A DNA stretch of 62,914 bases, filler included, from Parasitella parasitica NRRL 2501 (GCA_025201805.1; 8 parts of 8 records of this genome joined end to end with filler, not necessarily neighbours in it); one strand, 5' to 3'; positions 3,300 through 58,723 are shown, counted from the whole stretch's first letter. The notes: a model not told the origin generated them from the letters alone. Made by a program: numbers and translations.

Positions 3300-3300
3300 A

Positions 3301-3447: not shown

Positions 3448-3520
3448 TGCCTGCTAACAGAATTGAACTGTTGACCTTCTGCTTACTAGGCAGACGCTCT
3501 GCCAACTGAGCCAAACAGGC
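3448..3520 (-). tRNA. tRNA-Thr(AGT)
   Basis: 73-nt cloverleaf GCCTGTT...AGCAGGC-A, anticodon arm TCTGC-CTAGTAA-GCAGA, TTCAA T-loop, followed by a T-run Pol III terminator. Confidence 0.95.
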
Positions 3521-3532
3521 TTTTCTGCTATT

Positions 3533-8785: not shown

Positions 8786-11671
8786 CTACCAATAAAGAAC
8801 ATCGGTCGACGTGTTTGCAATGGAATTATCGCCGCTATTAGAATAGTCTATGGCCTTTGGAGAAGATACGAAAGTTTGCTCTTGGCTGTTTCGTTGGTTT
8901 GGCTCGGGTAGGAAGCCAAACAATACGCTTTGCGAAGGCGACATGGGCAAGTCTAGAGACGACATTGGCTTTGAGTGCCTGGGTTGTTGGTCGTAGATGT
9001 AGTTTGACGTTTGTTCAAATGATTTGGAGGTCGAGTTGAGCAAATCAGTTAGTTGCTGTTCTTGCGGCGATGGCTGCGGTTGCTGCTGCTGTAAATTATC
9101 AAAGTAGGCGTTCCATTCCTCTGTGTTTAGTGAAGTAGGCATTCCCCAAAACGCAGTGCCCAAGGGGTCGAATTCTTGCTGTTGGAGTGGGCCAGGAACA
9201 ATGCCAGGAGCCGCAAAGGGATCCATTGTAGGCGCAATGCCCAGAACTGACGTTGAAAAAGAGCGCTGATTGCTATTAGGAAGATTCTTATGTTGGGAGT
9301 TGCTAGAATCCAAGGATGCCGATCTGCCATGCTGAATTGACGGGCGCACGGAAGAGACCTGCACGGAAGTACTAGTAGTCGGTAAATAGAGCGAGAGACT
9401 CGTGCCAAAGTCCTTTTGGGTAGCAGGAGTTGAGTTAGGGGACGAATTGGACGAATTCCATCCGTTATTATAATCAATCGAGATGGGCTGCATTGCTACC
9501 ACAGCCTGCTGCTGATAATCCCTGTTCAGTTCAGGCGAGTTTGGGACCGCAATACACGGAGGGGGACTTGTCTTGTTGTCCAATTTTGGCACGTATTTAT
9601 CAGACTCCAGTTTGATGTCGCGTAAGCCAGCCAACTCGCCCAAGATGTTGCAGCAGCGAGCAGCGTTCATCCAGGTTAATTCCAGGTCATCCAGAGCACG
9701 CATGATTCTGTTGATATTAATCTTGGCATCAAAGGCGCGGTCGGGGTCGGCAGAAGATGCGACTTTGATAAAGATGATCCCGGCAGTGAACACAAAGAAA
9801 ACCGAAAAATTGTGCACAAATCGCAGGTGGTTTTCACCCAGCATGATGTTTACAATGTCCAGAACAGAAGTTGCTGCAGACTCGCAAATTTTGTACGACG
9901 GTAAAGAAATGGGCAGCTGCGATTGCGTTGGGCCCGGGATAAACGAACGATGCAGCAAAATCATGGTAGTGTAATAGGTAAGGTGCAGCTGGCAGATGGC
10001 AGACGGAGGATCAGGCCCCTTTTCGCCTATTTGTGTGTTGGGCAGTTTGTACTGAAGTGCGATGGGCAGGCTGCTGTGCCATTGAAGCAGCTGTCGATGC
10101 AATGTAGTGAGGATTCGGTCAATGTAGTGCGAATCGGTGTGGTGCTTAGCCTTGACAAAGTAAATATTTTTCAGCACGTGGCCCAGAATATCACAAATCT
10201 TGATGTTTTGAGTAAACACTTCCAAGAGCCGAATGGGTGGTCTAGATTGATCTTGGTTAGCGGCTGCGATAGGCTCATCGTCGTCCACTGCCGGGAAAGG
10301 GACGTCGCAATCCTTCTCTTCAAAGTTGGGTGCACGGCCATAAATAGCACTGGTAACTCTATCCACAATGTAGCAGCACCAAAACACCCGTTTCCTGCGG
10401 TCTCTTTCTTCGGGTGAGATGTTCCAATGATCACAGTTGCGATTGAGGCCCAAATCTTGAGCCATGCGAAAAGCCATACCGCTGTACAGCCATGCTCTGG
10501 CAGATTTCATAGCGCCTTGCTGGTGGCTGGCCATTAATAACAGCGCCTGCACGGTAGATATTTTGGGGGTGTCGTAATAGTCATCCAGTAAACATTTAGC
10601 CCTTTCGTAAAAGATGTCACCGGCGGTGTCAGGTGCATGCGGATCAGATCTCACACGTTCATCAGAGGATACTCGTGATGCAATGGCGTAAATTGCATTC
10701 AAAAGAAGGGGAGAGACAGGCTCGAGTGGCGATGAAGAGCAGACCAAGCGCCTCTTGTAGAACATGGGGAGCACAGGGTAGAAGTGGGTAAAGTAGAGTG
10801 TAATCAAGTGCTCAGACAGGTCTTTTGGCGGCAGATCAAGCGGATCAACATTGGAATATCGCCGTTTGCGAGATGACTGATACAAGTTCTGATCTACTTT
10901 GAATTGATGAGCGTATCCAGAAAAGTGAAAAGCGCCATTCTGGTAGGTGCGGCTGTCTGATAGCAGGTAGAATCCAGAAGATTTACCGAGGTAGCGGACC
11001 CCGCCGTTCTCATCCATCGACAGCTGTCCTGCGCTATCAATGGCAGGCGATCCAGAGGCTGAGGTATCTTGCTCACCAGGAAATTCGCTGTAGGTCAGCG
11101 TTGGACTGTCAAACAAAGGAGACAAAGGTGAGGCCATTACAGTATCGGTGTCTGTCTTGGAAGATTGCGTGCTTCGCCGTTGTCTACGTTGAGGTCTTCC
11201 ATTGATCTTTTCACCAGCGGGAGTCTCCAGCGGAGATTGCAGCTCCTTGATCAATTCCAAGGCACGAGGATCGACCTGATCGTCCTTTACAAGGTCGTTT
11301 AGGTAGGCCTCTAGTTTATGTAGCCTGTTTTCAATGGCTTCAATGTAGCCTTTGGGAGGACCTCTCTGATTGAAGCTTCTTTAGTTTGATTTCCGAGAGA
11401 GTTCGTCGTAGTAATAGTGACTCACCTTTTTAGTAGTATCTTTGTATGAACAATCCAAGTGGAAGGCCTGGCAATTCCCACAGACAGGAGAAGCCCCATC
11501 ACACTTGATCTTCTTTTTTCTGCATAGATCACTAAAGAGAACGTTAAAAAGTTGTTAACTGATGGATCTCGGATGGCGAATAAATGTGGGGTAAAGCCAA
11601 ACAAAAGAAACTTACCATGCACGACTCACTCTCTGTCGCTTGTTTGTTGCTTCATCACTGCTAATTGACAT
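8786..11671 (-). CDS. Zn(II)2Cys6 fungal transcription factor with fungal-specific TF middle domain (2 introns at the 5' end)
   Basis: Spliced N-terminus MSISSDEATNKRQRVSRAC|DLCRKKKIKCDGASPVCGNCQAFHLDCSYKDTTKK|RGPPKGY; then YLGKSSG, AFRMAQDLGLNR and RRKRVFW motifs. TATAAATA at about 11728-11735 (- strand). Confidence 0.93.
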
Positions 11672-13567
11672 TGTATCGATTGACAATAAAAACAAAAAAA
11701 AAAAAAGAATGAGAGAAAGAAACAAGGTATTTATATCTTTGATAAACTGTTATAAAGGGGAAAAAAATAAAAATAAAAAATGGAGATTTTGAATGTCGAT
11801 ATCACAAACTCAGAAGGTTACTTTTTTGCCTTCAATGTAAAGTGCTATCGATGCGTTTCCGTATATTTATTATAACCAGAAAAGATCCGGGATTTGTTTA
11901 TCTGCACTTTGTATGCTGCAATGGTACGAATAAGGCTATTTCTGATGTTATAACTTACTATAATCGTATTTATACGACGTTTAGCCAATGCTCCTCAAAA
12001 TTAATCATCAGCCGAAAATGGTTAATTTGGCCTCTTTGGAGAATTAAAAAAACAAGGCGCATTCTTGTATGACCTCATACCAGACTTTTCATCGTGTTTG
12101 TTGATGGCAATGCTATCGTCCGCCTTGTAATGTCTAAACAGATTCGATTTTTCATTTTCTGATCTGTCCAGAAGAGAGAGAAAAAAAAAAAAGGAATCTT
12201 GAACAACTCTTTTATTCGCGGCAAATGTCTTGTGCTGATGAACTGAAAAACAAAACACTCGGGAGACAAGCAACATAAAAAGTGCCAAGATTAATAGATT
12301 ATAATATCAAAACTGAGGCGCCCCATCTATAATTTTCCCTATTTTTGACATTTATATTTTTGAAACTGATAACGACACTAAACAAACAAGAGGAAGTATC
12401 AACAAAGGCTAAACAATTTGGATAAAAGTGAATATATAGATATTTTTGGAAAATAAGGAGTACAGTAGGGCCTATCTACCAGCACCATCTCAAAGGCAAC
12501 TTGGTTTTGAGTTATAATGTACAAATCTGGTGTGATAGCAATACCAAGGCTGTATACAACTACCCAAAGGCCAGATGTCTTGCAGTTTTACAAAAATATC
12601 GTCCGTGCATCATCATATACAAAAAGTTGACCGACAAGGAATTTCGCGGTTTCCAACGTCGTCAAACAGATGAATTTGTCGAAAATTATGGCAATAGCAA
12701 TACTCTCGCTTGTGATTTTAACGCAAATTCTCAAATGTCAATGATGGAATTAGCAACTTTAATAAAAAGGGAAGTAAATTATATACTTTTTCAAGAGAGA
12801 GAGTTGCGAACAACCCTAGCTTGAAGCATTGAGCTAGTGCTAGTAGTATTCCGATTGGGAGCATTTGCCTTGAACACATTGAACAACGTTCAGAGCAGTT
12901 TTCACATCACTGTACTAAGCCCTCTTTAATGCTTAATTTATGTTGAAGAATTTTTTTCAGTCCGTGTGCCAAGTGGTACAATTTGCATGCCATTTTAAAA
13001 CAAAACCAAGGCCCTTCCAAGTGAGTAAACTGATTATCGTCCCAACTCAACTTTTTTTTTTCATAGCTAGCATTTTGAAAATATTTGACAAGGAAGGTCG
13101 GACTCAAGCCAATAGATCGAAATTCCAGATACAGGATTGTACTCTCTCTTCAAGTCTTACCAAGTAAGAACTTGAAAGGCCAATCCGATCTCTTGGTAAG
13201 TGTAATGATAATTTGTCAAAAAATATTGGCGCTACCTTCAAGATAAGCTTTTTGAGGCTAGCAAGTTTACTCACTCGGAATGCCCCCTCTTCTTCAACAA
13301 AGGTTGTGGCCACTTTTTCCTTTGTTCATCGATTACTATCGAGGAATACGGCTTTTTTTTTTTTTGATTCATGGCATATACCATCTAGCAAAAAAATACT
13401 GAAAAATTTACATGGATTGAAAATTTCTTCAATTTTATTTTCGAGCATTAAACGCATTGTATTACATGGTATTTTTAGATAGTATTTGGTGCACTGCCTA
13501 TTTGTTTAGATTACATAATCACCAATGATTTGTTATCGTCATACGTGCCATAAGCTGTATGCACACT

Positions 13568-41998: not shown

Positions 41999-43500
41999 AT
42001 GGATCAGCAAGCAGGTAATGCGAACATAAAGGCATCATTCGAAGCATTTCTAATCCACATGATTTAGTTGATATTAAAAACAAGAAAGCTACTGCACCCA
42101 CACCTCAAAACACTCCCATCAACACAGCTCCTATCAACTCTCATTTTAACCCATCCATTCCAGCCATCACTGAAGAAATGGAAACTATTACCACTCCTGG
42201 TAAATCACAAAAGAGTGTGCTGTATAATGTATCATAGCTTAAGTCTTATTTCTTCATCAGGCGCTGCTTCAGGCAACCCTGCTCTTATGAGCATGCTTCA
42301 AGGTAAGTTGGGTAATCTCATTGGGGAGCCCCTTCCTGCTGCTGTCCAACGCCGTATAAACGGCCTCAAATATCTCCAATCCAAGCATACTGAACTTGAA
42401 GGCAAGTTCCAAGAAGAAGTTTTGGCTTTGGAAAAGAAATATTTCGAATTGTATCGTCCTTATTATGACAAGCGTGCTGAGGTTATTGCTGGCAAGTATG
42501 AACCCACTGAAGAAGAAGTTGCTATCGGGGCAAAGGTGGATGAGGATAGCGATAACGACCAAGAGTCTACAGTTGAAAAAATTGAGGAAGATAAGGAAGA
42601 TGAAGAAAATGTTACCGGTATTCCTGAGTTCTGGTTGACCGCCTTAAAAACTCATCCTCAAATCGCTGAGACTATCTCTGAAGAAGACTGTGCTGTTCTC
42701 AAGCATTTGGTTGATATCCGTATGACTTACCTCGAAAAGCCTGGCTTCTGTATTGAATTTGAATTCTCTGAGAATGACTACTTTACCGATAAAATTCTAA
42801 CCAAGACGTACCACTATCAAGACAATGTCAGCGGCGGTGATTATGTTTATGATTTTGCCGAAGGCTGTAAGATCAACTGGAAAGAAGGTAAGGACTTGAC
42901 TGTCACTGTCGAAACAAAAAAACAACGCCACAAGGGCACCAACAAAACTCGTGTCGTAAAACGCACTGTTCCTGCTGAAACTTTCTTCAACTTCTTTAAC
43001 CCTCCCACTATCCCGGACGAAGAGACTGATCTTGACGAAGAGGAAGCTGAAGGTTTGGATGCCAAACTGGAAGCTGATTACGAAATGGGTAATACTTATG
43101 TTTTCCATCATGCATCATCTAACACTTTGCTAATATTCTCGATAATTATTCTTTAGGCGAGGAATTCAAGGAGAAGATTATTCCTCACGCTGTTGATTTC
43201 TTTACTGGGAAAGCTCTTGATTACGAGGATTATGATGATGAAGATGATTTTGAGGTAAAATAAATAAGCATGCGATAATACCATGCACTGAAGTAACTCA
43301 TCTTTTTTTTTTCTCGATAGGATGATTTTCCTTCTGATGACGATGACGAAGAAGATGAAGATGAAGATGATGACGAGGATGATGATGAAGATGCCGTAAC
43401 TATCTTGAATTCTTGTTGTGATGAATTTGATTGCTAAATGTTTTATTTTATATAGCAACCTGCCAAGGGTGAAAACGCTCCAGAGTGTAAACAATCTTAA
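41999..43500 (+). CDS. NAP1: Nucleosome assembly protein 1, multi-exon
   Basis: GIPEFWLTAL, KKQRHKGTNKTR, ETFFNFF, acidic tail, C-terminal ECKQS*. Confidence 0.95.
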
Positions 43501-44360
43501 ATTGAACATATCTTATTTTACTTATATAAATCGTTTTTATTCTATTCTTCTATGTTTTTTTTCTTCTTCACTCTTTCTTTTTTATATGAAATAAACTTAT
43601 AAATATACAAACATACATTATGACAGCTCATAAAATAGAGTTTACTCAAATTAAGAATTCATAAAAGTGAACGAAAGCATAAAATTATTGATACTACTTC
43701 TAGTGCTTAGAAATAATACTATGCTGCAAAACTCAACAGGAACTGGTGGACATCGCTGTGCTCAAATCCGAGCGCTCAGATGTTCAGACCAAGAAATCGC
43801 AACATTACATGGCGATATCCCTGGATACTTATGTCGTTAACTGATCTAACCAACAAACGGCATGAAAACGATACCGTAGTTACCATAACCGTTCCTGAAC
43901 GGATCGAAGGTTAAACGGCATCGATTATTCAATCTAGTAAATAGAAATATTCAATAGAATGTCTTGTATAAGAAACCAACATTTGGGTTCCACTTATTCT
44001 AAATTGCGAAGCTCAACTTATCGATGAATGATTCAGATTCATAATGATTAGCTAATTAAATATAGAAATAGGCCTTGCTCTGATTACTTCAGTGTTGACA
44101 ATTAAATATCAAACATGATCTGATTGTATTTTATAGACTGAATCAGATAGATTTATTCGAATATAAATAGACAGCTTCTTGTCAATCAATAAATCAATAG
44201 TTTTGTATCTGGTAAATTAAGTCTTTATAACTTTCTTATATTCTTTATGTCACATACAATCACCTGCTGTGGTCATTTTCAAGACCTGGCACAAAAGTAT
44301 TATGAATAAAATTGTAATTCTTTGGCAGATATATTTTATCAGACATTTGACATAACACTT

Positions 44361-44854
44361 TTTTAAATTGTATATCGAGAAAATGAATTAAGATCTAGGC
44401 TAATTGGTGTTAAATGTTAAAAAATAACAATAGTAACTAAAAGTAAAAAAAAGGAAAATTCAATTGTGTTTATTAAAAATGAAAATGATCGTTTTTATAC
44501 TATTTCATAATGTCTATCATCCACATGTCTACTTTCTAAAATTCAAACTATCAAATACTGCCAAACCAAACTGTCAAATCTCCATTTCAAAATATAAAAA
44601 TAATTGCCTCAGATCAAAATGTAACCATGGATTCCAACATTTAGCCATCGGCAGTAATTATAATCCAAAATAAGAGACTGAATTCAGATCGATCTTCACC
44701 TCTCAGAATACATTAAGGCTCCAGAATAAACATGCTTCGACAACACCATTTTAAGTAGGTACTACATGATTAATACTCTTAAACATCACGTGAAATAATT
44801 GCCTCTTTGAGAGTTAGTATAGCGTTTGCAATTTAAAAAGATACGCATATATCA
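44361..44854 (-). mobile_element. Diverged, 3'-truncated LTR of the 45675 Gypsy family
   Basis: Reverse complement aligns with 45675-46170 with many substitutions; starts TGATATATGCGTAT. Confidence 0.85.
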
Positions 44855-44860
44855 ATAAAT

Positions 44861-45222
44861 TGATACTCTGCGGTGCGGGTTTTGTGAAATTTGTAGCGAT
44901 GTGTTGGAAAGATCTTGCAGTAAACATGCCAAAGCCGAGACTAATTAGACTGTTTTGCTGTTGTTTAAGTGTATATTATGTCGAATAACTAAGATGGGAT
45001 GGTAGCTCAGCGATATAGAATAGCAAGTAATTATATATAACAGAATTTAAACATCAGAAAGTTCAATTTACTTCAAATGTAAAGCATAATTCAATATACA
45101 TATCTAATGCGAGACGTTCCCAGCATTTAAAATCAGACTCAGGAGCATAGCTTCCATTGGCTCAAACTTTGATCACGTGCGGATAACTAACTGCACAAGA
45201 ATAATACTTTACACTTATTCCA
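44861..45222 (-). mobile_element. Candidate 362-bp solo LTR inserted between the older LTR and tRNA-Leu
   Basis: TG...CA ends, AAAT on both sides, motifs shared with 3533-4018. Confidence 0.6.
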
Positions 45223-45230
45223 AAATATAT

Positions 45231-45313
45231 GGAAAGATGGCCGAGTTGGTCTAAGGCGTCACGTTAAGGTCGTGATCTCTTCGGAGGCGTGGGTTCAAAT
45301 CCCACTCTTTTCA
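45231..45313 (+). tRNA. tRNA-Leu(AAG)
   Basis: 83 nt, acceptor GGAAAGA/TCTTTTC, anticodon arm TCACG-TTAAGGT-CGTGA, long variable arm, GTGGG-TTCAAAT-CCCAC. Confidence 0.96.
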
Positions 45314-45378
45314 CTTTTGTTTTCACTTGGCTGCCTATGCAGAGGCGGTGTTAATTATATATTTTGCGTTATATTTTG

Positions 45379-45555
45379 TGTCGTACATTTGTCCGGTACA
45401 CACAGACTTTGTGTGTAACACTTTTAGTTATTATAAATATCAATTGAATACAAAAGAATAAAGATCTATCTTTCATCTCTTACTCATATTTTATATACGC
45501 TTAATAAAGCAGCACAAAACTAACACATCTCTGCACACGACATCTTCACACGACA
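45379..45555 (+). mobile_element. Short solo LTR composite (11 bp of the family A start plus family B 45390-45542)
   Basis: TGTCGTACATT then TGTCCGGTACACACAG...CACACGACA; matches 3301-3398 and 4888-4930. Confidence 0.7.
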
Positions 45556-45581
45556 CATAGGCAGCCAAGTGAAAACAAAAG

Positions 45582-45664
45582 TGAAAAGAGTGGGATTTGA
45601 ACCCACGCCTCCGAAGAGATCACGACCTTAACGTGACGCCTTAGACCAACTCGGCCATCTTTCC
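45582..45664 (-). tRNA. tRNA-Leu(AAG)
   Basis: Identical inverted copy of 45231-45313. Confidence 0.93.
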
Positions 45665-46289
45665 ATTTATTTTTTGATACATGCGTATTTTTTTGTGCTG
45701 TCAACTTACGATATACTATTTCTCAAAAAGGCAACTCATTTTCACGTGATGTTTATGAAGAGTCAAGTAATACGTATTTTTTAAATGGTGTTTGAATGCA
45801 TGTTTATTCTGGAGTCTCAAGTGTTCTGAGGTGAAGGTCAATCTAAATTTAGCCTCTTATTTTGGATTATGTAATTGTTGCCGATGGCTAAATGTTGAAG
45901 TTCATGGTTACATTTTGATCTGGGGCATTTATTTTTACTTTGAAATGGAGATTTGACAGTTCGATTTGACAGTTTATGATGGTTTGAAATTTTAGAAAGT
46001 AGACATATAGATGTAGATAGACATTATGAAATCGTATAAAAATGATCATTTTATTTTTAATAAACCATATCGAATTTTTCTTTCTTTTACACTTTAGTTA
46101 CTATTGTTATTTTTTCACATTTAACACAAACTACCCTAGATCTTAATTCATTTTCTCCATATACAATTTAAATAGCTCTTACAGTCTCCCTATTTACAAA
46201 CAAATTTATATCACTTTGACTTACCTGCTCACTTACGAAGGTAATCATAAAAGAGAACTTGACATTTATCAGTTGGTCCGGTTTACAAG

Positions 46290-47276
46290 ATGAATACTAA
46301 CTATTCTGTGTCTACGAAGATAATTACAATGGCTCTCGAACGTAAATATGGTTCTGGTTCTTCTGGCGCAAGGTTCATGAGGGAACCTAAGGTCTTCGAT
46401 GGAAAAGACGAAGAAAAGGCCTCGGTTTGGCTGGCACGCATGAACAGGCTCAAGAAAAGTGCCAAGATTACTGACGAGGAAATGTTGATAATCGTGGAGG
46501 AGAACCTGGTCATGAAGGCTGAATCGTGGTGGAACGTTGTTGGTGCCAAGGCAGAGAATTGGGCTCAATTCGAAGATGCCTTTAAGAAGCAATACTTGGT
46601 GGATCTGGACGATAAATGGTGGGCTGCGGTCTATGCATTGAAACAAGGCGAAGAATTTCGTACTGTTACCGATGTTGCGATTAGGTTGGAAGAACTGTTC
46701 AACTTACTGGGTAACAAGGATCAAGGCTTGCTGGTACGCACCTTCTTGAATGCTATTAAATCAAGCATTGCATACGAGGTTGAGAAAGAGAACCGCCCCA
46801 CAACCTTTGCAATTGCCAAGGAAAGAGCATGCCAAATCGAGAAGTCCCAGGTTAAGTACGGGATCTCGAAAGGTCAGGGTGATGTGCCTGGGCCTGATGC
46901 CAAGGTGATGAGTTCCAATGGTCAAGAAAGGGATTTCGCCGATAACAAGTCCGAGTCCACGGCGATCTCGAGTGTGATGTCCTTGGTTGATAAGCTGGAA
47001 AAGTTATCTATCAACTTGGTAGCTCTTCAGGATGCAGCAATCTCGAACAAGGGTGGTCTCGTTGCTGGAGGCAATAACTATGGTGGTGGATTCAGACGCA
47101 ATGGTCAAACAGGCATTGTGTGTTTTAGATGCGGGGAACCTAGCCATAAAAAGTATGAGTGTTCGGCTGAATTTAGCGACAAGCTGGATAAACCTACCTC
47201 CCCTCCGCTAGCCACGGGTCCGAATGCTATTCCTTTAGGTAACCAGGCGGGAAAAGACAAGGAGTGGTCCCAATAG
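46290..47276 (+). CDS. Gag (element 1)
   Basis: PKVFDGK capsid motif, AESWW, LKQG, zinc knuckle CFRCGEPSHKKYEC. Confidence 0.9.
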   Translation: MNTNYSVSTKIITMALERKYGSGSSGARFMREPKVFDGKDEEKASVWLARMNRLKKSAKITDEEMLIIVEENLVMKAESWWNVVGAKAENWAQFEDAFKKQYLVDLDDKWWAAVYALKQGEEFRTVTDVAIRLEELFNLLGNKDQGLLVRTFLNAIKSSIAYEVEKENRPTTFAIAKERACQIEKSQVKYGISKGQGDVPGPDAKVMSSNGQERDFADNKSESTAISSVMSLVDKLEKLSINLVALQDAAISNKGGLVAGGNNYGGGFRRNGQTGIVCFRCGEPSHKKYECSAEFSDKLDKPTSPPLATGPNAIPLGNQAGKDKEWSQ

Positions 47277-49886
47277 GGGATGGTTCCACTCCAATTGTTA
47301 ATTCCCCCAAAATCCCCATATCCACTCCGGTTAATATGATCGACACCGTTGCCGAGGTGGATGAATTGAATGAGGTGTTGGCTGTGAAACGTGGGCATGC
47401 ATCGAATGAAATTCCAATTGCTGTTCCAGATCAGCAAGTCCAGGTGAATAAAAGAGCCAGGCAACAAGGGCCGCCACCTGTGGAAATCCAGCCCATTGTC
47501 GATGCTGCAATGAAGGAACCAATTAAGAGACGTGCTAGGCCACAGCAAAGGGTTTTGTCGGTGCCAACTCGATCGCTAAATATATGGGAAAGGCTGGCTA
47601 ATCTGGATGCAGGGTTGTCTGTACTAGATTGGGTTGCGATTGACAAGGATGCAGCCAAGGATCTGGTTGATGGCTTGCGAGACTTGAGAAAGCAGAGGCC
47701 TAAAAGAACAAGACGGCATCTTGAAAAATTTGAAGGGATCGAAGTTCCAAACAGGGTCAATGCGGTGGGGCATCTGATGGACGGTGATGATGGTGATTCT
47801 CTTTCTCTTTCATCGTGCTATGACTCCAATGGCGACTCCTTGGATAGTGTTAGCTCATCTGACGAAGACTTGGATTTGGACGACATCAAGTCGGTGTATA
47901 GGTATCCTTATGACCTGTCAAAAATGAAATGGAGTTCTCCTTTGAAGGCTGAAGTTTCAATTAACGGCAAGAAGGTCATTGCTTGTTTTGATACCGGGGG
48001 TTCTATCAGTGTAATTAGTAAAAGGCTGTGTGAGGAACTTGCTTTGGTTACAAATGGGGATACTCTCCAATTAGTGGGCTTTGATAACAATACGGCGGGT
48101 GCTCGAGCCGATATCGTGATGGACGTACCCATCTCAATTCAAGGTCATGTACGTCCTGACCATATGTGTGTGCAAGCTGACGCGACCGATAATCTATTAA
48201 TTCTTGGGGTACCATGGTTCCAAGCCTATGGTGTTGAGTTAGACATTGCCAAATCTGTTATTAAGGTACCTACGACTTCTGGCGTGATTAAGTTGCAAGG
48301 ATATACCTCACACGTACCGGGCCTAGTCAACAAGGAAATCTATAAGATCGAACTGGCTAAGAAATACAGTAATTCTTTGGAGGAGGATTTGATACCGGAT
48401 ACAGGCAATGAAGGCATGGTTTTTACCGAAGACAACATTACAGAAGGCGTCCCTAATTTCTTGAAGCAAGTTGTACAGGACTTCAAGCATACCTTTTCTG
48501 AAGTGTCTGGTCTAACTAAAATCAAAGGGTACAAAATGAGAATTCAGCTTGTTGAAGGCGCTGAGCCGATCAGATCGAAATGCTTTCGACTTACTTGGGA
48601 AGATGAAGACGCTCTCAACCAGTACATTAACGAAATGCTGGAGCTGGATTTGATCGAAGAGGCCGACGGTACTTGGAGTTCTGCTGCGTTTTTGGTGGGT
48701 AAAAAGGATGGTGCAAAAAGATGTGTGATTGATTATAGGCGGCTCAATAAATTGATTGTACAATCGTACTTTCCTACACCAACAGTAGCTGAATTGACTG
48801 AACTGACCGCCGGTATGAACTACTTTTCGTGTTTTGACGCTTCCTCAGGTTACCATCAGCTGGAAATTGACCCGCAAGATAAGCTTTCCAGGGACGTAAC
48901 AGGTTTCATTACCAAGAGAGGCATTTTTCGCTATAAAGTTTTGCCAATGGGGGTGTCTGTGGGTGGATCAGAATTTCAAAAATGTATGAATGATATATTC
49001 AAGGATCTCGTTGGTGTTTGTTTGGCCATTTTTTATGACGACGTGTTATGCTACTCGAAAACCGAGGAAGAACACAAGATCCACTTGAGATTGCTATTTG
49101 AGGCGGCAGAGAAAGCAAACCTGAAGTTCAAGCGCAAGAAATGTCATTTTGGTCAAGACTGTGTTGAGTATCTAGGCCATGTTATTGGTAGTCAAGGAGC
49201 TAGACCTGGGGATAGGAATATCGAGAAGATAAAAAACTTCCCAGCGTGTCAGGACGTTTCGCAATTGAAGAGCTTCTTGGGTCTGACTGGCTTTTTTCGT
49301 AAATTCACACCTAATTATGCGGTAGTGGCGGCTGATCTGGTTAAATTGACAAGAAAAAGTGCAAGATTTGTTTGGGGTAAGGAGCAGCAAGAAGCCTTTG
49401 ATAAACTTAAGGAAATTCAATGCTCAAAACCGGGGCTGGCTTTTCCGGATCGCGAGAAATTTCAAATTTTGACGGTAGATGGGAGTTCATCTGGTCTTGG
49501 GTGTGTATTGACCCAGGTGGATAAAGAAGATGTGACAACAAGAAAGCGTGAACAAGTAATTGGATACGGCTCTAGAAGCTTAAGGGGATCTGAGCGCAAT
49601 TGGCACATTCACGAGATTGAAGCCTTTGCCGTGGTTTGGGCCATTCAATTTTACAAGCATTACTTGCGAGGACGAAAATTTCTGTTAGTGACGGATCATT
49701 CGAGTCTTGTATATTTATTCAAGCCCACAAAGCAATCTCCCAAATTAACAAGATGGTGCGCTAGTGTAATGGAATACGACTTTGACATCATGTATAAACC
49801 GGGTCCCGAGAACATTGCTGATCCACTGTCAAGATGCATTCCCTTTGAAGAATTTAAACAGGAGATGGGATTTATAAATATAGTAT
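47249..49886 (+). CDS. Pol: protease-RT-RNase H (element 1), in the -1 frame, ends at a gap
   Basis: FDTGGS protease, IDYRRLN, DASSGYHQ, LPMG, FYDD, TVDGSSSGLG, TDHSSL, ADPLSR. Confidence 0.92.
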
Positions 49887-50307
49887 NNNNNNNNNNNNNN
49901 NNNNNNNNNNNNNNNNNNNNNNNNNNNNNNNNNNNNNNNNNNNNNNNNNNNNNNNNNNNNNNNNNNNNNNNNNNNNNNNNNNNNNNNNNNNAAAGGGAGA
50001 GAGACATTAGGACATTATTATTATTATTATCAGAGAAATTTTATTATTATAAAAGAACATCAATCAATAATCAATCAAGAAAAAAAAGAAGAAATCAGAA
50101 AATAAAAGAAAAACAACCTTTCTGACGCTTACTTAAATTTGGGACAAATTTTCCACTTTACTTGGCTCTTCTCCTATACGAAAAACCATTTAATCTCGGT
50201 AAAAGGTCTTAATCTAGTCTCGGTTTGGTTGTTTCCCTTCAACTAGTTATTGTTGATTTTAATTAATTGTATTATCTTGGTCGTATCGCAATTGAATCGT
50301 TGGTATC

Positions 50308-51675
50308 ATGGCTATCTCATTTCCCTGGTATTTAAGTCTCTACTATTATCTTCTAAATGGATCATATCCCAAGGATGCTGACAATAAGGTGTGTCGTAAG
50401 GTTCGTTATCAATGTGGTAAATTGAAGTTGGCTGAGGATGGACGTTTGCTTGAAATTAAATCTGGTCGAGAGCTGTTACATGAAGGTAATGCTCTGCAGA
50501 GAGTACAAGAAGTTCATCAGGAGGGTCATCAAGGAATTTTGAATACATTGGATAAGATCTCGAAGTACTACCTTTTACACGAAGCTCGTGATATGGTCGA
50601 AGTTGTGGTGAAATCGTGCGAGACATGCCAATATAGGGCGAGAATTCGTTTTACTAGGTCCAATCCTATGAAGGTGGTGAAGACTCCTAGACATCCCATG
50701 TTCTTTGTGAGTACAGATGCTATAGGTCCTCTCCCGGTTACGTCCAAGGGTAATCGATATATTTTGACAGCTATTTGCGGTTTAACGAGGTGGCCCATGG
50801 CTCGAGCAGTTGCTGAGATTGATGAAGTTACTACTGGTGAATTCTATTTCCATGAGATTGTTAAGAATTATGGTGTGCCTAATTATTTGTTGAGTGATCG
50901 AGGTGCAAATTTTATATCCACTTACGTTCATCAATTCCTGAAACAAATTGGCTGCAAAAATATCATGGTAACAAGTTATCGGGCTGCTGCAAATGGTATG
51001 GTTGAAAAGTTGAATCATTCTCTGGTGTCTATTCTGGCAAAATTAGCAAGAGACGATAAGAAAATTGATCAGTGGGATCAATACCTGGATGCTGCGTTGA
51101 TGATACTGAGGTCTACTAAAAACGCCGGTACTGGTTATAGCCCACCAAGTTACTTGCTTTATGGTTATGAATTCCGTACTCCAGCTGTTTGGGTGTCGCC
51201 TTGTATTGATTATGTGGAAGGTGAAGAAGAAGAACTACTTGAGCGTATTGGTTTGATTAGTGACAAGCTAAAAGGTGTGAGAAAAAACGCACGCGAATAT
51301 TCAGATGCTAGAAAAGCAAGAGCGAAGATCAGATACGATGCCAATGTCCATTTTGTTCGACAATTTGAAATCGGTGAGCTCGTTCTGTTGAAGTGCCCGA
51401 ATCCTACAAGCAAGTTTGGAGATAAATGGGAAGGTCCTTTTAAAGTGGTGCAAGTGAATGCAAGTTCTGGTACATACCATTTAACGGGAAAGAACAGTTT
51501 AAGGTTGAAACATGCTGTAAATGGTGACCGTTTGAAGCCTTATAATGATGAAGTAAGGCGCATGGTTCCTGATGTGTTGGTTTCTCAAGCTACTGATCAG
51601 TTTCAAAGGTGGATTAACAAGAGAATCAATATGGTTGAATCGTTGGAAGAAAAGGTGTTCTTCGAATTAGTATAG
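50308..51675 (+). CDS. Integrase (element 1), HHCC-DDE-GPY/F, no chromodomain
   Basis: HQEGHQG..CETC, TDAIGP, SDRG, NGMVEK, WEGPFKV. Confidence 0.92.
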   Translation: MAISFPWYLSLYYYLLNGSYPKDADNKVCRKVRYQCGKLKLAEDGRLLEIKSGRELLHEGNALQRVQEVHQEGHQGILNTLDKISKYYLLHEARDMVEVVVKSCETCQYRARIRFTRSNPMKVVKTPRHPMFFVSTDAIGPLPVTSKGNRYILTAICGLTRWPMARAVAEIDEVTTGEFYFHEIVKNYGVPNYLLSDRGANFISTYVHQFLKQIGCKNIMVTSYRAAANGMVEKLNHSLVSILAKLARDDKKIDQWDQYLDAALMILRSTKNAGTGYSPPSYLLYGYEFRTPAVWVSPCIDYVEGEEEELLERIGLISDKLKGVRKNAREYSDARKARAKIRYDANVHFVRQFEIGELVLLKCPNPTSKFGDKWEGPFKVVQVNASSGTYHLTGKNSLRLKHAVNGDRLKPYNDEVRRMVPDVLVSQATDQFQRWINKRINMVESLEEKVFFELV

Positions 51676-51962
51676 CGCAAGTTTAGGGGGGGATACGTGA
51701 TACATGCGTATTTTTTGTGCTGTCAACTTACGATATACTATTTCTCAAAAAGGCAACTCATTTTCACGTGATGTTTATGAAGAGTCAAGTAATACGTATT
51801 TTTTAAATGGTGTTTGAATGCATGTTTATTCTGGAGTCTCAAGTGTTCTGAGGTGAAGGTCAATCTAAATTTAGCCTCTTATTTTGGATTATGTAATTGT
51901 TGCCGATGGCTAAATGTTGAAGTTCATGGTTACATTTTGATCTGGGGCATTTATTTTTACTT

Positions 51963-52192
51963 TGAACTTCAACATTTAGCCATCGGCAACAATTACATAA
52001 TCCAAAATAAGAGGCTAAATTTAGATTGACCTTCACCTCAGAACACTTGAGACTCCAGAATAAACATGCATTCAAACACCATTTAAAAAATACGTATTAC
52101 TTGACTCTTCATAAACATCACGTGAAAATGAGTTGCCTTTTTGAGAAATAGTATATCGTAAGTTGACAGCACAAAAAAATACGCATGTATCA
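51963..52192 (-). repeat. Inverted partial LTR of element 1 (palindrome arm)
   Basis: Reverse complement of the first about 230 bp of the LTR. Confidence 0.9.
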
Positions 52193-52202
52193 AAAAATAA
52201 AT

Positions 52203-52285
52203 GGAAAGATGGCCGAGTTGGTCTAAGGCGTCACGTTAAGGTCGTGATCTCTTCGGAGGCGTGGGTTCAAATCCCACTCTTTTCA
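52203..52285 (+). tRNA. tRNA-Leu(AAG)
   Basis: Identical to 45231-45313, with a different 3' flank carrying a T-run terminator. Confidence 0.93.
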
Positions 52286-52349
52286 TTTCTTTTTTAAGCT
52301 TGTTATTTGCGGAGACAGTTTTTATTTTACGTTTCTGTTGTTGTCAGTT

Positions 52350-55300
52350 TGTCGTACATTAGTTTTGACACTCAACTTAAAACAATATAAATAGTAGATC
52401 TTATGTCAAATTGAATAAACCTTATCTTTTTACTGATACATATATTTGCCTTATTGAATTTACAATTATCACGACAATTGGTAGCATCTGGTTCAGATCT
52501 CAATAGCCACATCATTCAAAGCATTTTCCTTAATTGATGAACGACAGCAAAACAACTGAAATATACATTTGGCTCAAATCTGTTGAATACATACTAAACA
52601 ACAAACTTCCATCAGACAAGCACTATCAGTTCAAAGAATTTCACAACAACATCTTTAAAAATAAACCAATTTCATATTCTGAATTCACTGTAGCAAAATA
52701 CATCAAGAATATAAGCCAACTGCCCCAAATCAACGAATCAATCTTACACAACAACGTCAACCTCATTCTAACGGCTTACCAGCAATATCAACAACAAAAA
52801 ACAATGAACAGTGATGATGATATTTCGAAAGCTGACATACTAGCTTTATTACAATCTTTGCTACAGCAATCTTCTTCTCAAGCCCCTACCAACTCTGGTC
52901 CTCTAATCAGAGTTGCTGAACCTTCAAAATTTTCTGGGCAACGAGATATTGCCACCATCGACGCTTGGTTACTTTCCATGGAAAGATACATGACTCATTA
53001 CAAGATTGACCCTAGTAATTGGGTGTCAAATGCAATTCATTTTTTGGATGGCCGTTGTTTAGGATGTAAAGGCTAAGCGAGGTGGGTTGTTGAGTTGATG
53101 TTGTGCCTGAGATCCAACTTGGGTATTCTCACAATTATGCAAAAGTATTATACCATGGTTACACTCATTAGAAATCCTTTATACCACAAGGCGATTATAC
53201 TCTTTCTCAAGACCACTATCCTTCCTGTCTCCTTCTGGTAATAACTAGTTTACGATTAATCGTAATAGCAGCACATGGCTAGTAATTGGTTCTATCTGGT
53301 GCAAGTTTATTAAGCCTCGATTCCACAAGCATGCAACCGATGTCAGCACTCGAAAAGTATAAATAGTCTAGGCAAATGTTGTGTAGAGAGGGATCATCTT
53401 ATTTTTTTATACGAATAAATATATCCAGTTTTAATTGTATATCTATTTCGTATATTAAAACAGCCGTGCCATCATATGGTGGAATAGATTACAAGTTGCT
53501 GACAAATGCCCCAACAACTGGGCTAGCTTCAAACACAAATTGAATTCAGAATTCAAACCATTGTTTGCGCAATTGACAGCCCGTGATCGGTTTGCTAATC
53601 TCAAGCAGGGCAATAAATCGGTCCAGGAATATGTCCATGCTATGCAAGATATCTTGCTGGAAGCAACTGATATCGCCCAGCCTGAGGCTATCGATCATTT
53701 TGTTCGACATTTAAAGCCTCAGCTCTTTGCCAAGGTGAGAAGCTCTCAACCCTCCACATTAGACGCGGCATACAAAGCTGCTTTTGATGAGGAAATTTGC
53801 CTTTTACCTTCTGGTGTTGCTGTCTCGTCTGGCTTCTCTCCTGTCTCTGTGTCTGCTCCGTCTGCCTTTGTGGATGATCCTATGGATCTCTCTGTTATAT
53901 CTCAAAACTTGTTCTGTGAATGGTGCAAGAGAAAAGGGCATACCATGGATATTTGTCGCACTAAAGCTTATGCCATTCGTCAATTTGAAAAACAACATTT
54001 GCAACAACAGACCAACAAACCAAAGTTCCACAATGGTTACAAGAAAAATAACAATTGGAGACAGAGTAGAAACAAATTTGCCAACAATGACCGCAATAAT
54101 AATACGCAATTATTGAACATGCTTTTGGAAAAAATGAATCTCACATCTGCTTCTATTGATGATAATAAAAATGATCTTGTTGATTTATCTTCTGATCATG
54201 AGGAAGATAATCGCTCATCTTATGTTTCTACTGTCCCTTATGATTCTTCAATTGTGTCCTCTGATGTCAAACTCGTGAATAACATCTCCAATAATCTATC
54301 GGCTAAATTACCCCTATTTTCTGCTATGGTTGGAGGATCTCATTTCAAGATAATGATTGACAGTGGTGCTAGCGCCAACTATGTTCATCCTAAATTAATA
54401 CACTATGCAAAAACAAAAGCGAATATCAAGAACCAAGCGGTAGAAACTGCTAATGGACAGCAAGCGTGTATTACACAAATAATCAATTTTGATATCTACC
54501 TTGGTGAGGATTACGAATTCAAAAACAATGTGAACGCGTTTGTCTTTGAATCCAAATTTGACATTATTTTGGGCAATGCATGGTTGAAACAGATCAAGCC
54601 TTCTCCTGACTGGTTCTCGGATACTTGGACTCTAACTCACCGAAATGGGATTGATATCACTATATTGAAGCCGTTGAAAGAGAAACGGGTATCCAAATTA
54701 TCTACTGATATAGACTCTACTAACCAATCTTTGTCAAACAATAATACAGCCAATCCTCACAATAATGAGGTTTTAAACAATGCTACGACGTCTCTATCCT
54801 CGACATTTTTTGATATCAAGAATGCATATGATCCTGATGAGTCGCAAGATGCACTGTTACCGCCTAATATCCCAACGGATGATTACTTGCTTTCATCAAA
54901 TCAATTAGCCCGTCTACTTTAAGAAAAACCAAATCTCGGAATGCTTTGTCATCAATTTCATGAGTCAAGACTCTGACAATACTCTGATCACACCAATATA
55001 TCCGCCAACCTTTCAACATAGTCATCAATTCAACCATTTAGAAATTTCAAAAGGCAATGTAGGCGAGCATTGGAACTAAAGGAACTGCGTCGCCAGCTCA
55101 ACGATTTAGAGAAGAAAGGTTTGATTGTGCCTACTGCTTCTCCATGGGGTGCTCCTATTCTCTTTGTTCGAAAGACTAACTCAAAAGAACTGCGCATGGT
55201 TTGTGATTTTCGTGCTTTGAACCGTATCACCATATCGCAGAAGATTCCAATTCCTCGAATTGATGAATGTTTGGATCTTCTTCATAAAGCCACCCATTTT

Positions 55301-56260
55301 TCCCAAATTGACTTGACTGGAGCATTCAACCAAACCAGATTATCGGATTCAGATTCTTTCCGGGCCACGATATCGCATCGGTTCGGACAACACAGATGGC
55401 TGGTTACCCCTTTCGGACTCCGAAATTCAGGCCCTTATTTTCAATCTCAAATGAATTTCGTACTCCGCGATTGCACTGATTTTTCTGTCTGTTATCTTGA
55501 TGACATTTTAATATTCAGCAAAAGCGAAGAGGAACATAAGGAACATGTCAAAACTGTATTAGCTAAACTAGATACAGCAAAATTTGTGATTAACAAAAAC
55601 AAATCTCATTTTAATATTAAAGAGCTAACATTTTTAGGCTTTGACATCACTAAAGATGGCATATTACCATCCAAGAAGAAGGTTGCTGCTGTACAAAATT
55701 GGCCGGTCCTTACGAATGTTCAACAAGTTCGACAGTTTTGTGGTCTTGCGCAACATTACAAACGTTTTATTCCTAACTATGCTGGAATTGCATCCTGTCT
55801 GACGGATCTTACTGCTGGTTCAGGCTCCAAGACTCGACCTATTACTTGGACTACGGAATGTCAGCAAAGTTTTGAACAATTGAAGTCTCTATTATGTTCT
55901 GCTCCTGTACTGAGTACTCCTGACATGGACAAACCGTTTCGCATTGAATGTGACAGTAGTGATTTAGCAATCGGTGCTGTGCTGCTTCAACAAGATGATA
56001 ATCAACACTGGAAACCTTTAGCTTTTGAATCAAAAAAATTATCGAAAGCTGAACGCAATTACCCAGCTCAAGAACGGGAACTGTTGGTAATATTAATCGC
56101 TCTTCGCACATGGAGATGCTTTATTGATGGTAAAAATTATGTTGTTCTAACTGATCATAAACCTTTGATACATTTGCAAAAACAACAAAAAGTAACTCCA
56201 AGATTGGTACGATGGATATCTGAACTTGATCTATACAACCCAACAATTGAATATGCAATA
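52350..56260 (+). mobile_element. Ty3/Gypsy element 2 (127-bp LTR), disrupted and truncated after RNase H
   Basis: LTR 52350-52476, PBS TGGTAGCA at 52479 (iMet-like), gag PSKFSG and CEWCKRKGHTMDIC, protease IDSGA, RT SPWGAP/YLDD, RNase H CDSSDLAIG. Confidence 0.9.
53056..53462 (+). mobile_element. 407-bp solo LTR inserted in the gag of element 2
   Basis: TGTTTA...TAAAACA ends, 5-bp TSD GCCGT. Removal restores the gag frame. Confidence 0.92.
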
Positions 56261-56409
56261 AAATTGGGATCAATTTTATGTGAAAATAAAAAAAATAAAA
56301 AAATAAAGCCAGAGAAATACAATTATAGTCTTTCCACCTTTATTTTCGATTAAAAGAAAAACTGAAAAAAAGATACATGATCTTTAAGAGAGCTTGTATT
56401 TATACTACT

Positions 56410-58723
56410 TGTAAAATTGTCTCGCTACAGTGAGAATGCTTATTTTACAGCTTATTTGAAGAATGACTTTTGTTGACATTCTCTCACTTGTATTGTAGTT
56501 GAGATTTCGATATGTTGGTATTGAAATTGATACTATGGTTTTGGGCAGGATTGTCATATTTGAGGATCCTGATTATTTCTAATGCGACTGAGCTTTCCTT
56601 ATTGTGTAATAAACAAGCCATTTCTGGCATCTAGAATTATTGCAATTGTTTTNNNNNNNNNNNNNNNNNNNNNNNNNNNNNNNNNNNNNNNNNNNNNNNN
56701 NNNNNNNNNNNNNNNNNNNNNNNNNNNNNNNNNNNNNNNNNNNNNNNNNNNNNNNNNNNNNNNNNNNNNNNNNNNNNNNNNNNNNNNNNNNNNNNNNNNN
56801 NNNNNNNNNNNNNNNNNNNNNNNNNNNNNNNNNNNNNNNNNNNNNNNNNNNNNNNNNNNNNNNNNNNNTAATTGTGGTGCTATATAATAGGTGCCATTTC
56901 ATTACACTCTCCCCCGCCAAGCTTTTTGATAGGGGAAAAAGCTGATTTTTATTTGTAAAATGCTCAGAGTATTTGAGTTGTCGCGCATGCATGCAAGAAT
57001 TTTGGTGTAGTAGTATCATAATTGTTATAAGGTACAACGTTGTATTTGATTGATTAACCAACAGGATAAGTATGTTTATTGTTGAGATTTGCAATACAAA
57101 ATAAAAAAGCGGTGAAGCCAAAAAAAATTAAAAGTATAGCAATCTATTTACGCCTCTTTGGGGCTTGTGGAGTAGATGAATCACTAGTGGCACGTTTGCG
57201 GCCACGGCGACTCGGTTTTTGAGGTGTGGATTTCTTATTATTACCATTTCCTTTGTTTGGGTGTGCTTTTTGAAGCTTCTCCCAGTAAGTTTGAATAGGT
57301 ACAGGAGTTGAAAATAAATCCTCGGTAATGTACTCATTGTGGCGATCTTCATAGCCAGCCCATTTGACAAGGTATTCAATTATACCGTCTGGGCGAGTGT
57401 ACGGTGATCTCGGATTTCTTCAACTTCGAAAATTTCATTTTCGATATCAGTTTCGTCAATATTGACAAGTTTTAATTCAGATGGTGTATACTCACGATGG
57501 AGTAATTCATTTGTTTCATCCTTCAAGATGTAATTGCCTGCCTGAGTACGACGAACCACAATGTAGGGGCCAGCGTACAAGGGAGATAATTTTGATTGAC
57601 GACCTTCAGGCAGTCGAATCATTACAGCTGAATCAAAGGGAATATCTTTGATAATCATTCTGCGACCATCTAATCTTTTGTTATACTCCTCTGCTAAACG
57701 TTTTGTGCGTTCTTGAATTGCTGGAAATACAATATTACTCATATATTGTATCCTTTCATGTAATTCCTCGATGGATAATGGCTTTCGGCCATTCAGATTT
57801 AGTTTATCAGTTTCTCTACGAGTATTCACTTGTCGAGCAAACATCAAACTAAATGGAGTGCTAGCGGTTCTTGTTTTGACTTTCATGTTCATAACTAATT
57901 GACAAATAGATAGTTTATCATCCCAATTATGGGAGTCATTGCCGCACATTTTGCGCACTGTTTGAGTAGCAGTTTTAATAGCATTTTCTGCTCCACCATT
58001 AGATTGTTTGTAATAGGGTAGTGAGAAATGCTATTTGATGGACAATGTCTTCAGAAAATGTCTCATCAAATGGTTTCGAAATTCTTTGCCATTATCACTT
58101 TGGAAAATAGTCAGAGCAACACCATAATCTCCAAATATATCCATGATACATTGGGCCACAGTGCTACTATTTTTGTTTGGTAGTGCACGAAGGATTACAT
58201 AGCGTGTGCACAAATCAAGGAGCACAAGGCAATAAACATTACCCTTATCAGTAACATGAAGCGGACCAAGTAGATCAACAGCGACATGGTCAAATGCTTC
58301 AAAGCTTACAATGCTCTTGGCCGGATTAAATCCTTTTTTGCTAATATTGTGTTGAGCGCATTCACGACAAGATTTTAAAACCTCTTTAACGTCGGCAAAA
58401 ATGCTATTCCAGTGTAGGCCATGGTACGTGTGAATATGAGCAACTACGGAAGCTTCTCCAAAATGTCCTAATTCATGGGCATCTCTGATTATTTGAGCAC
58501 GTTCACTTTCTGGAGGGCATACATAATCAGTAGTTGATTGTTTGAAGGATTTATCATTCAATTTGATAGCCAACACATTTAGATCTTTGTCTTTGCTATC
58601 GAAAGTTGTTTCTTTAACAAGCTGCTTTTGATTATTAGAGGCTCGTTTTATTAAGATTAGCTTTTGCAATCTCTTAATTTGCTTGTCAGTTTCATCTGCC
58701 AACAGTTTGTCCTCCTCAATTGG
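56410..58723 (-). mobile_element. Chromovirus-type Ty3/Gypsy 3' fragment (integrase, chromodomain, PPT, 3' LTR)
   Basis: HELGHFG..CREC, VDLLGP, SDNGKEF, YAGPY, frameshifted chromodomain FEVEEIRDHR..EYLVKWAGY (stop at 57144). PPT GGCGGGGGAGAG then TGTAATG at 56906; far LTR end uncertain. Confidence 0.88.

Follow-up and report, generated by a model that had tools for sequence, protein, structure and literature searches.

The window, i.e. the whole stretch of DNA analysed (62,914 nucleotides including filler, from Parasitella parasitica NRRL 2501), contains three identical tRNA-Leu(AAG) genes, each accompanied by LTR sequences. tRNA #1 (45231–45314, plus strand; ARAGORN and Rfam RF00005, 55 bits), tRNA #2 (45581–45664, minus strand; ARAGORN and Rfam) and tRNA #3 (52203–52286, plus strand; 52203–52285 according to Rfam, with one extra base at the 5′ side according to ARAGORN) have their mature 5′ ends at 45231, 45664 and 52203, respectively. 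The first two genes form a convergent and the last two a divergent pair, and the ncRNA matches obtained with Rfam on the sequence piece were tRNAs only. The 3′ ends of tRNA #1 and tRNA #2 enclose a solo LTR of a second family (45390–45543, plus strand) with the termini TGTC...GACA, which was delimited by contig depth, by contig joints at 45390 and by a motif search. Its summed contig depth is far above that of a single contig, and other genomic copies carry, in contigs, the PBS-like sequence TTGGTAGCATCTG directly after the position corresponding to 45543.

Next to tRNA #2 and pointing away from it lies a retrotransposon, termed element 1, with the complete Ty3/Gypsy order of gag, PR-RT-RNase H and IN. 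Its 5′ LTR (45675–46271, plus strand, 597 nt, TGATAC...TATCA) was defined by the repeat pair and by alignment and is separated from the tRNA by the spacer ATTTATTTTT (45665–45674). The distance of 10 nt between this LTR and the tRNA end at 45664, as claimed in the initial annotation, proved exact to the base, with TGATAC starting at 45675. The LTR is followed by a PBS-like stretch (46272–46289, plus strand), of which GTTGGTCCGG is kept in the relatives; CAGTTGGTCCGG was found at the LTR end of nine loci from four species. The PBS match of Ty3 is short, as it is here. The gag ORF (46290–47276, plus strand) gives a weak Pfam match to Retrotrans_gag and shares 60–65% identity with Mucor and Rhizopus gag proteins, while an exact-sequence look-up with the gag of the window returned no match. 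In a different frame follows the ORF for PR-RT-RNase H (47264–50125, plus strand; Pfam Asp_protease_2, RVT_1 and RT_RNaseH) and, behind a stop-rich gap of ca. 180 nt, a separate integrase ORF (50308–51675, plus strand; Integrase_H2C2 and rve). The succession of Pfam domains, gag, PR, RT, RNase H and then IN, is that of the Metaviridae. Among solved structures, the Ty3 RT (pdb-code: 4ol8, E = 3.7e-76) is the best relative of the RT-RH portion, and homology to Ty3 is apparent from residues 424–859 of RT/RNase H, which match 4ol8 and 7q5b with E values of about 1e-76. Compared with partial Parasitella parasitica proteins, the identity amounts to 89% for pol and 96% for IN; with Rhizopus and Mucor proteins it is about 70%. 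A metagenome scan with a pol profile yielded only short, distantly related contigs (27–40% identity) devoid of tRNAs.

The polypurine tract AGGGGGGG followed by ATACG (51685–51697, plus strand) lies just 5′ of the 3′ LTR, an arrangement common to the relatives. The 3′ LTR (51698–51966, plus strand) is truncated at about position 270 and 99.6% identical to 45675–45944; 45689–45944 and 51711–51966 are identical. Because the LTRs match over the ca. 270 nt retained by the 3′ LTR, except for one indel in a T-run, element 1 is considered young and little filtered. Element 1 itself thus displays a PBS, a PPT and direct LTRs bounded by TG...CA, and a short TSD of 4–5 bp is seen in its relatives, the TSD of element 1 being unreadable owing to the truncation. 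Altogether, the element and its relatives form a Mucorales Ty3/Gypsy lineage characterized by TGATA...TATCA LTRs, the PBS-like GTTGGTCCGG and ORFs for gag, PR-RT-RH and, separately, IN.

The surroundings of tRNA #1 revealed two LTRs stacked in front of the gene. The outer one is the older of the two, a solo LTR belonging to the element 1 family (44362–44854, minus strand, BLASTN) with a truncated U5 end, which shares 82.9% identity over 508 nt with positions 1–498 of the element 1 LTR. Its 5′ end (TGATAT...) faces the tRNA, and on the left, at ca. 44360, it is adjoined by a high-copy repeat in the contigs. The inner one, LTR2 (44861–45222), is a 362-nt solo LTR of a different high-copy family, recognized by its TG...CA ends and its AAAT/AAAT TSD; its summed contig depth far exceeds that of the flanking single contigs. 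The end starting with TGGAAT is next to the tRNA, and CACGTGAT is found 44 nt from that end, as in related LTRs; on the basis of these weak motifs LTR2 is probably on the minus strand. The hexanucleotide ATAAAT between the two LTRs (44855–44860) consists of AT, the portion of the original 10-nt spacer furthest from the tRNA, and AAAT (44857–44860), the first TSD copy of LTR2. The spacer AAATATAT between LTR2 and tRNA #1 (45223–45230) starts with the second TSD copy (AAAT, 45223–45226), followed by ATAT and the gene. LTR2 is a later insertion than the older LTR and landed 8 nt from tRNA #1. When LTR2 and one AAAT are deleted, the older LTR comes to lie 10 nt from position 45231, with the restored spacer ATAAATATAT between ATCA and GGAAAG, which confirms what had initially been proposed for this gene.

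A family LTR is thereby found at 10 nt from each of the three tRNA-Leu genes of the window, in the case of tRNA #1 after removal of LTR2. At tRNA #3 this LTR is an inverted copy of positions 1–230 (51963–52192, minus strand), which is 100% identical to 45675–45904, turns its 5′ end towards the gene and is separated from it by the 10-nt spacer AAAAATAAAT (52193–52202), identical to that of tRNA #2. This third case did not figure in the initial annotation. The 3′ LTR of element 1 runs directly into the inverted LTR (positions 230 to 1) leading to tRNA #3, and the near-palindrome at 51927–51966 has only 36 nt of unique sequence at its centre. The third case could therefore be a rearranged copy instead of an independent hit. 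Elements targeted to the divergent tRNA #2 and tRNA #3 would come to lie tail to tail and form a long quasi-palindrome, and a central deletion of the latter would join a truncated 3′ LTR to an inverted LTR. Such a central deletion is a plausible origin of the right-hand end; a mis-join is possible as an alternative.

As LTRs are high-copy repeats and the fusion of the 3′ LTR with an inverted LTR has a shape that assemblers can make, the arrangement was compared with public sequencing data. In six public runs of five studies, 71–80% of the sampled words from 42000–46300 are present. For four runs, each from a different study, Logan contigs were placed on 43900–49899; since such contigs break or are mis-threaded at repeats longer than 31 nt, they serve as junction evidence only, and contigs threading the 84-nt tRNA copy, e.g. 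the joint of 45390 and 45567 on opposite strands, were ignored. The three critical junctions, older LTR–ATAAAT–LTR2 (contig 44719–44887), LTR2–AAATATAT–tRNA #1 (contigs 44948–45258 and 44968–45328) and tRNA #2–10 nt–5′ LTR (contig 45567–45718), were found without any difference, several of these contigs reaching just 26–28 nt on one side compared with a bridging rule of 31 nt. Because contigs from four studies carry the junctions unaltered, the core is unlikely to be an assembly artefact. Collapsed or mis-joined repeats as the explanation for the entire pattern appear very improbable, given these matches, the same geometry in independent assemblies of other species (see below) and the biological reading available for the palindrome, i.e. 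tail-to-tail LTRs of a divergent tRNA pair with a central deletion. The contigs also display tandem LTR junctions elsewhere in the genome, composed of an LTR end, 4–5 nt and an LTR start. The summed contig depth of the LTRs is much higher than that of the element 1 interior, which is covered by a single contig; although summed depth is no copy number, this suggests that most family copies in the genome are solo LTRs.

The generality of the geometry was evaluated with relatives that were picked by gag, pol or IN homology, blind to tRNAs, and whose flanks were inspected afterwards. All relatives with a readable 5′ flank adjoin a tRNA gene, the LTR starting 8–12 nt (mode 10) away from it. In Mucor velutinosus, one element (L042) is found 10 nt from tRNA-Leu(CAA) with the TSD ATTT, and another (L001) 12 nt from a 15-nt 5′ fragment of tRNA-Thr with the TSD GATT. 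The M. circinelloides element (L044/L045) is located 10 nt from tRNA-Asn(GTT), and a further P. parasitica element (L048) 11 nt from tRNA-Ala(TGC). In Rhizopus delemar RA 99-880 (L006), the distance to tRNA-His is 9 nt, the TSD is TCTC, and a later insertion of 7.2 kb interrupts the 5′ LTR. Four cases stem from JGI 3300066330: 9 nt from tRNA-Gly(GCC) with the TSD GTTGT and 10 nt from tRNA-Glu(TTC) (both L007), 8 nt from tRNA-Arg(ACG) (L046) and 9 nt from tRNA-Leu(AAG) (L049). Unscored were an M. circinelloides 1006PhL locus (L043) with an N gap at the 5′ LTR, a Lichtheimia locus (L047) cut at the contig end, and the main element of L049, whose 5′ end was destroyed by another insertion.

Together with the four events of the window, the nine of the relatives make a sample of 13, drawn from loci chosen for containing an element. 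The spacers, counted from the mature tRNA 5′ end, measure 8 nt (twice), 9 nt (three times), 10 nt (six times), 11 nt and 12 nt. Without exception among the 13 events, the U3 or 5′ end of the LTR is directed towards the 5′ end of the tRNA; the polarity is unambiguous in the eight full elements and relies on weak motifs for LTR2 and for the stretch 838–2424 of L046. Under equal odds, such a uniform orientation has a two-sided probability of ca. 0.0002, and the chance of a random insertion into a window of this kind is estimated at roughly 5 in 100,000 (based on ca. 240 tRNA genes and ca. 46 Mb in R. oryzae). Nine tRNA types are used (Leu-AAG, Leu-CAA, Asn, Gly, Glu, His, Arg, Ala and Thr), and apart from A/T-richness the variable spacers and TSDs share no motif, leaving the tRNA gene as the sole common feature. 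A tRNA carried along as a part of the element was considered and rejected because nine different tRNAs are involved. Both a window of a few nucleotides and the use of many different tRNA genes, as expected for targeting of Pol III start sites, are hence found among the 13 events.

Two further explanations have to be weighed against these data. All three cases in the window might go back to a single event, if one block of LTR, spacer and tRNA had been copied by inverted or segmental duplication. The tRNA genes and their flanks of 9–25 nt are indeed 99% identical, the LTR fragment at tRNA #3 matches the 5′ LTR completely over 230 nt, and the spacers of tRNA #2 and tRNA #3 are the same. However, the LTRs at tRNA #1 and tRNA #2 differ by 17% compared with one of 34 nt in the tRNA flanks (binomial p ca. 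0.014), and therefore these LTRs were not copied along with the tRNAs. LTR2 has a TSD of its own, and five other genomes show the same geometry, with individual TSDs, at eight further tRNA types; the TSDs GATT, ATTT, TCTC and GTTGT, which flank four full elements, identify these as integrations and not as products of block duplication. We consequently regard block copying as an improbable explanation of the window, accounting at most for the case of tRNA #3. The other explanation invokes random or regionally biased insertion followed by selection which spares survivors near tRNA genes. Regional preferences of the Ty1 type combined with purifying selection do shape transposon maps, and the main text of Ma et al. 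(2009) reports co-localisation only. Yet selection offers no route to a 5-nt window (8–12 nt) with a single orientation in all 13 events, leaves stacks spaced by exactly one TSD length unexplained and fits poorly with the youth of element 1, so that we give this explanation hardly any credence. The pattern is beyond chance, and neither block duplication nor misassembly accounts for it.

Serial stacking provides additional information on how the position is determined. If a newer element enters between the gene and an older LTR, the two LTRs are expected to be about one TSD length apart. In the window, the two LTRs are 6 nt apart, the second having landed at 8 instead of 10 nt. Corresponding stacks were observed in L045 (TATCA-TAT-TGATAC), in L046 (TATCA-TTT-TGTTGC) and in L042, where another element begins with its 5′ LTR immediately behind a 3′ LTR and its ATTT TSD; the tandem LTR junctions in the contigs agree with this. 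Repeated hits thus produce stacks of the type LTR–(3–6 nt)–LTR. As the next hit occurs at the same distance even though the upstream DNA now consists of LTR sequence, the distance is measured from the tRNA gene body.

On these grounds we interpret the locus as a nest of LTR retrotransposons whose members entered the Pol III start region of tRNA genes one after another, each at a defined position and in a defined orientation, and assign a probability of about 0.9 to this interpretation. The claim of the initial annotation that Ty3/Gypsy elements integrate position-specifically just upstream of tRNA genes and stack serially holds in the window and is extended by the readable relatives in five other Mucorales genomes, with nine tRNA types, TSDs and one orientation. 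Mechanistically, the intasome probably docks onto the Pol III pre-initiation complex, in which TFIIIB is placed by TFIIIC bound to the internal A and B boxes. In this interpretation, the elements make a staggered cut of 4–5 bp, the centre of which lies ca. 7–10 nt ahead of the first mature tRNA nucleotide; the U3 end of the 5′ LTR is thereby positioned 8–12 nt from the tRNA, and the element is transcribed away from it. The tRNA gene stays intact and continues to serve as a target; a later element entering at the same distance pushes the older LTR outwards and creates the LTR–(3–6 nt)–LTR stack, and most copies subsequently collapse to solo LTRs.

A close point of comparison is Ty3 of Saccharomyces cerevisiae, likewise a Ty3/Gypsy element, whose insertions at the Pol III start of tRNA genes are confined to a few nucleotides and leave the gene intact. 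The integrase of element 1 was modelled on the basis of a 28-sequence alignment (mean pLDDT 75). The model comprises an NED, an HHCC NTD, a CCD, a long linker helix and an SH3-like CTD; its NED-NTD-CCD-CTD layout is shared with Ty3, and Foldseek matched it to chains of the PFV and Ty3 intasomes. Beyond the SH3-like CTD, there are about 45 poorly modelled residues with only a low-confidence helix. A Pfam chromodomain was not detected in integrase residues 300–455 even at E = 10, and PF00385, which would indicate a chromovirus, is present in none of the homologues with at least 42% identity (P0049–P0095). In Ty3, the integrase is positioned at the same kind of site, the CTD touching TBP and the vestigial chromodomain touching Brf1 (PMC8632968). 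Judged from the geometry, the integrase of element 1 likely reads its position from the Pol III pre-initiation complex as Ty3 does. Because no chromodomain was detected, the Brf1 contact of Ty3 is not simply transferable, and the protein contacts with the Pol III complex may differ from those of Ty3. Three additional differences are apparent: Ty3 inserts in both orientations according to a review, compared with 13 of 13 events directed away from the tRNA here; IN is encoded by a separate ORF behind a stop-rich gap; and the host belongs to another phylum, the Mucoromycota.

These differences bear on the question whether the targeting is real but mediated by a tether other than TFIIIB, such as TFIIIC, a factor peculiar to Mucorales or, by analogy with Ty1, a subunit of Pol III, in which case the similarity to Ty3 would be convergent. 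An integrase ending about 45 residues past its SH3-like CTD, in contrast to the chromodomain-mediated Brf1 binding of Ty3, would fit such a tether, as would the fixed orientation, which is found neither in Ty3 nor in DGLT-A, and a distance set from the gene body agrees equally well with TFIIIC. On the other hand, a window on the scale of single nucleotides at the expected start region is the signature of TFIIIB and Ty3, whereas tethering of the Ty1 type generates a broad pattern of ca. 1 kb. Moreover, the RT-RH portion appears closer to Ty3, with 260 bits compared with 201 and 135 bits for two other Gypsy lineages in Mucorales, values that come from different programs; as scores rather than a tree, they provide a weak hint of shared ancestry with Ty3. 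We consider a different tether a serious alternative, albeit one that is less likely than not.

Outside Saccharomyces, further fungal Ty3/Gypsy elements are found near tRNA starts, namely Tj1 of Schizosaccharomyces japonicus, Ylt1, Tyl3 and Tyl6 of Yarrowia and Tca8 (beta) of Candida. The distances upstream of the tRNA start, as tabulated in a 2018 review, are 1–10 bp for Tj1 and about 5 bp or 6–30 bp for the other ascomycete elements. In contrast to the Mucorales lineage, all of them reside in Ascomycota, and the likeness drawn here concerns the element type and the insertion site. In Dictyostelium, several unrelated retrotransposon lineages (DGLT-A, Skipper-2 and TRE5/TRE3) use tRNA genes as landing sites, in the upstream as well as in the downstream region; the orientation of TRE5 is fixed and runs counter to that of the tRNA, and the window likewise harbours a second LTR family just downstream of tRNA genes. 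DGLT-A, however, inserts 13–33 bp upstream with both orientations occurring, the TREs belong to the non-LTR retrotransposons, and the host is an amoebozoan, which makes the resemblance an analogy and not a relationship. Following this analogy, one may speculate that Mucorales tRNA genes are landing pads for several LTR lineages obeying different rules, with a lineage at −10 upstream and a family 25–75 nt downstream. The upstream one would be the orientation-locked, chromodomain-less lineage, reading the Pol III start at minus 10 by a contact other than that of Ty3, and the downstream one the TGTC...GACA family with the PBS TGGTAGC, settling 25–75 nt behind the tRNA 3′ end. We put this combined proposal forward tentatively and consider it rather unlikely as a whole; if true, it would constitute a fungal counterpart of the upstream/downstream system of Dictyostelium, independent of yeast Ty3.

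The initial annotation knew of no description of such targeting in Mucorales. The association as such had been noted before, however: Ma et al. (2009) reported that Ty3/gypsy elements co-localise with tRNA genes in Rhizopus oryzae (delemar), a member of the same fungal order and the source of the tRNA-His case described above. Their main text devotes a single sentence to the observation, besides the title of supplementary Fig. S1, with no distance, orientation, TSD, stacking or cross-genus comparison given there. The geometry at the nucleotide level, in turn, appears undescribed: the 2018 review on Pol III targeting covers Ty3, Tj1, Tca8, three Yarrowia elements and the Dictyostelium families and includes no Mucorales element, nor is one mentioned in a 2016 survey of tRNA targeting or a 2011 survey of fungal LTR elements, and we found no paper giving exact position, orientation or stacking in Mucorales. 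To a phenomenon known in outline for one species, the present data thus add its precise insertion point, its strictly uniform orientation, the serial stacks, its occurrence in several genera and the domain layout of the integrase.

The Mucorales lineage represents a genuine case of the "safe-harbour" targeting familiar from yeast Ty3. Ty3/Gypsy elements that target Pol III genes with nucleotide precision are documented in the reviews consulted for Ascomycota yeasts and Dictyostelium only; their range is hereby extended to an early-diverging fungal phylum, in which the targeting is conserved in at least four and probably five genera. For the Mucorales genomes themselves, the tRNA-proximal LTR stacks represent predictable polymorphic markers and explain assembly breaks at tRNA genes. 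The fixed orientation combined with the lack of a detectable chromodomain renders the lineage a natural comparison for the reading of TFIIIB by intasomes, and as Mucor lusitanicus (circinelloides) is genetically tractable, the mechanism is amenable to experimental testing.

The integrase (IN) of the lineage to which element 1 belongs is encoded by an ORF of its own with an ATG start, downstream of a gap of 180–500 nt which contains stop codons in all frames and is kept across species. This gap spans 50126–50307 in the window, 12536–12869 and 9546–9892 in the M. velutinosus loci L001 and L042, and 3877–4392 in a further relative locus, L003. It could constitute an intron, or IN could be made by re-initiation. 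At the 3′ end of element 1 (51927–51966), the truncated 3′ LTR (positions 1–270) is joined to an inverted LTR copy (positions 230–1), forming a near-palindrome with a centre of 36 nt. This joint reflects either tail-to-tail LTRs after a central deletion or a mis-join by the assembly.

Eight tRNA-proximal LTRs from several species carry a CACGTG(AT) E-box 41–69 nt from the LTR start, located at 45743, 44792 and 45179 in the window and also found in R. delemar (L006), in P. parasitica (L048) and in L007 and L049 of JGI 3300066330. The motif, missing from the Mucor copies, may act as a promoter element. LTR stacking differs between two M. circinelloides assemblies of the same tRNA-Asn locus (L044 and L045): one strain contains a single LTR ahead of gag, the other a solo LTR followed by TAT and a second, more diverged LTR. 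This difference is a strain polymorphism or the result of LTR-LTR recombination at the stacked site. In the window, the old LTR borders at its truncated end on a very high-copy repeat (43900–44360). The summed contig depth of this repeat exceeds the depth of single contigs nearby by a factor of hundreds, and its contigs include many length variants.

A second, high-copy LTR family with TGTC...GACA ends and a PBS-like TTGGTAGCATC occupies six tRNA loci, spread over two genomes, where it lies 25–75 nt downstream of the tRNA 3′ end: 45390–45543 and 52343–52477 in the window, 4791–5125 and about 7222–7429 in L007, 551–about 705 (minus strand) in L046 and about 16484–16645 in L049. Element 3 of the window (gag-PR, 53540–54922; RT-RH, 55070–56353) belongs to this family and is cut off after the RNase H domain by a further, minus-strand Gypsy element (56400–58723), whose IN (58031–58702) runs past the end of the piece. 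An exception occurs in M. velutinosus, where an LTR of this type (L042 12246–12544) lies 10 nt upstream, not downstream, of a tRNA; therefore, no single placement rule can be read for the TGTC...GACA family.

In L001 the start of a LINE-like element (1087–5698; ORF1, 1383–2339; ORF2 with endonuclease and RT, 2765–5698) lies no more than about 220 nt upstream of an intact tRNA-Thr. The element is directed away from the tRNA, a single case that recalls Dictyostelium TRE5.

Beside tRNA-Glu in L007 (4298–4330), a minus-strand element likewise starts 10 nt from the tRNA. It lacks the GTTGGTCCGG motif; its PBS, canonical and 18 nt long, is complementary to the tRNA-Arg(ACG) 3′ end. Given this different PBS, the minus-10 rule, an LTR start 8–12 nt upstream of the mature tRNA with the element pointing away, is common to more than one LTR lineage.
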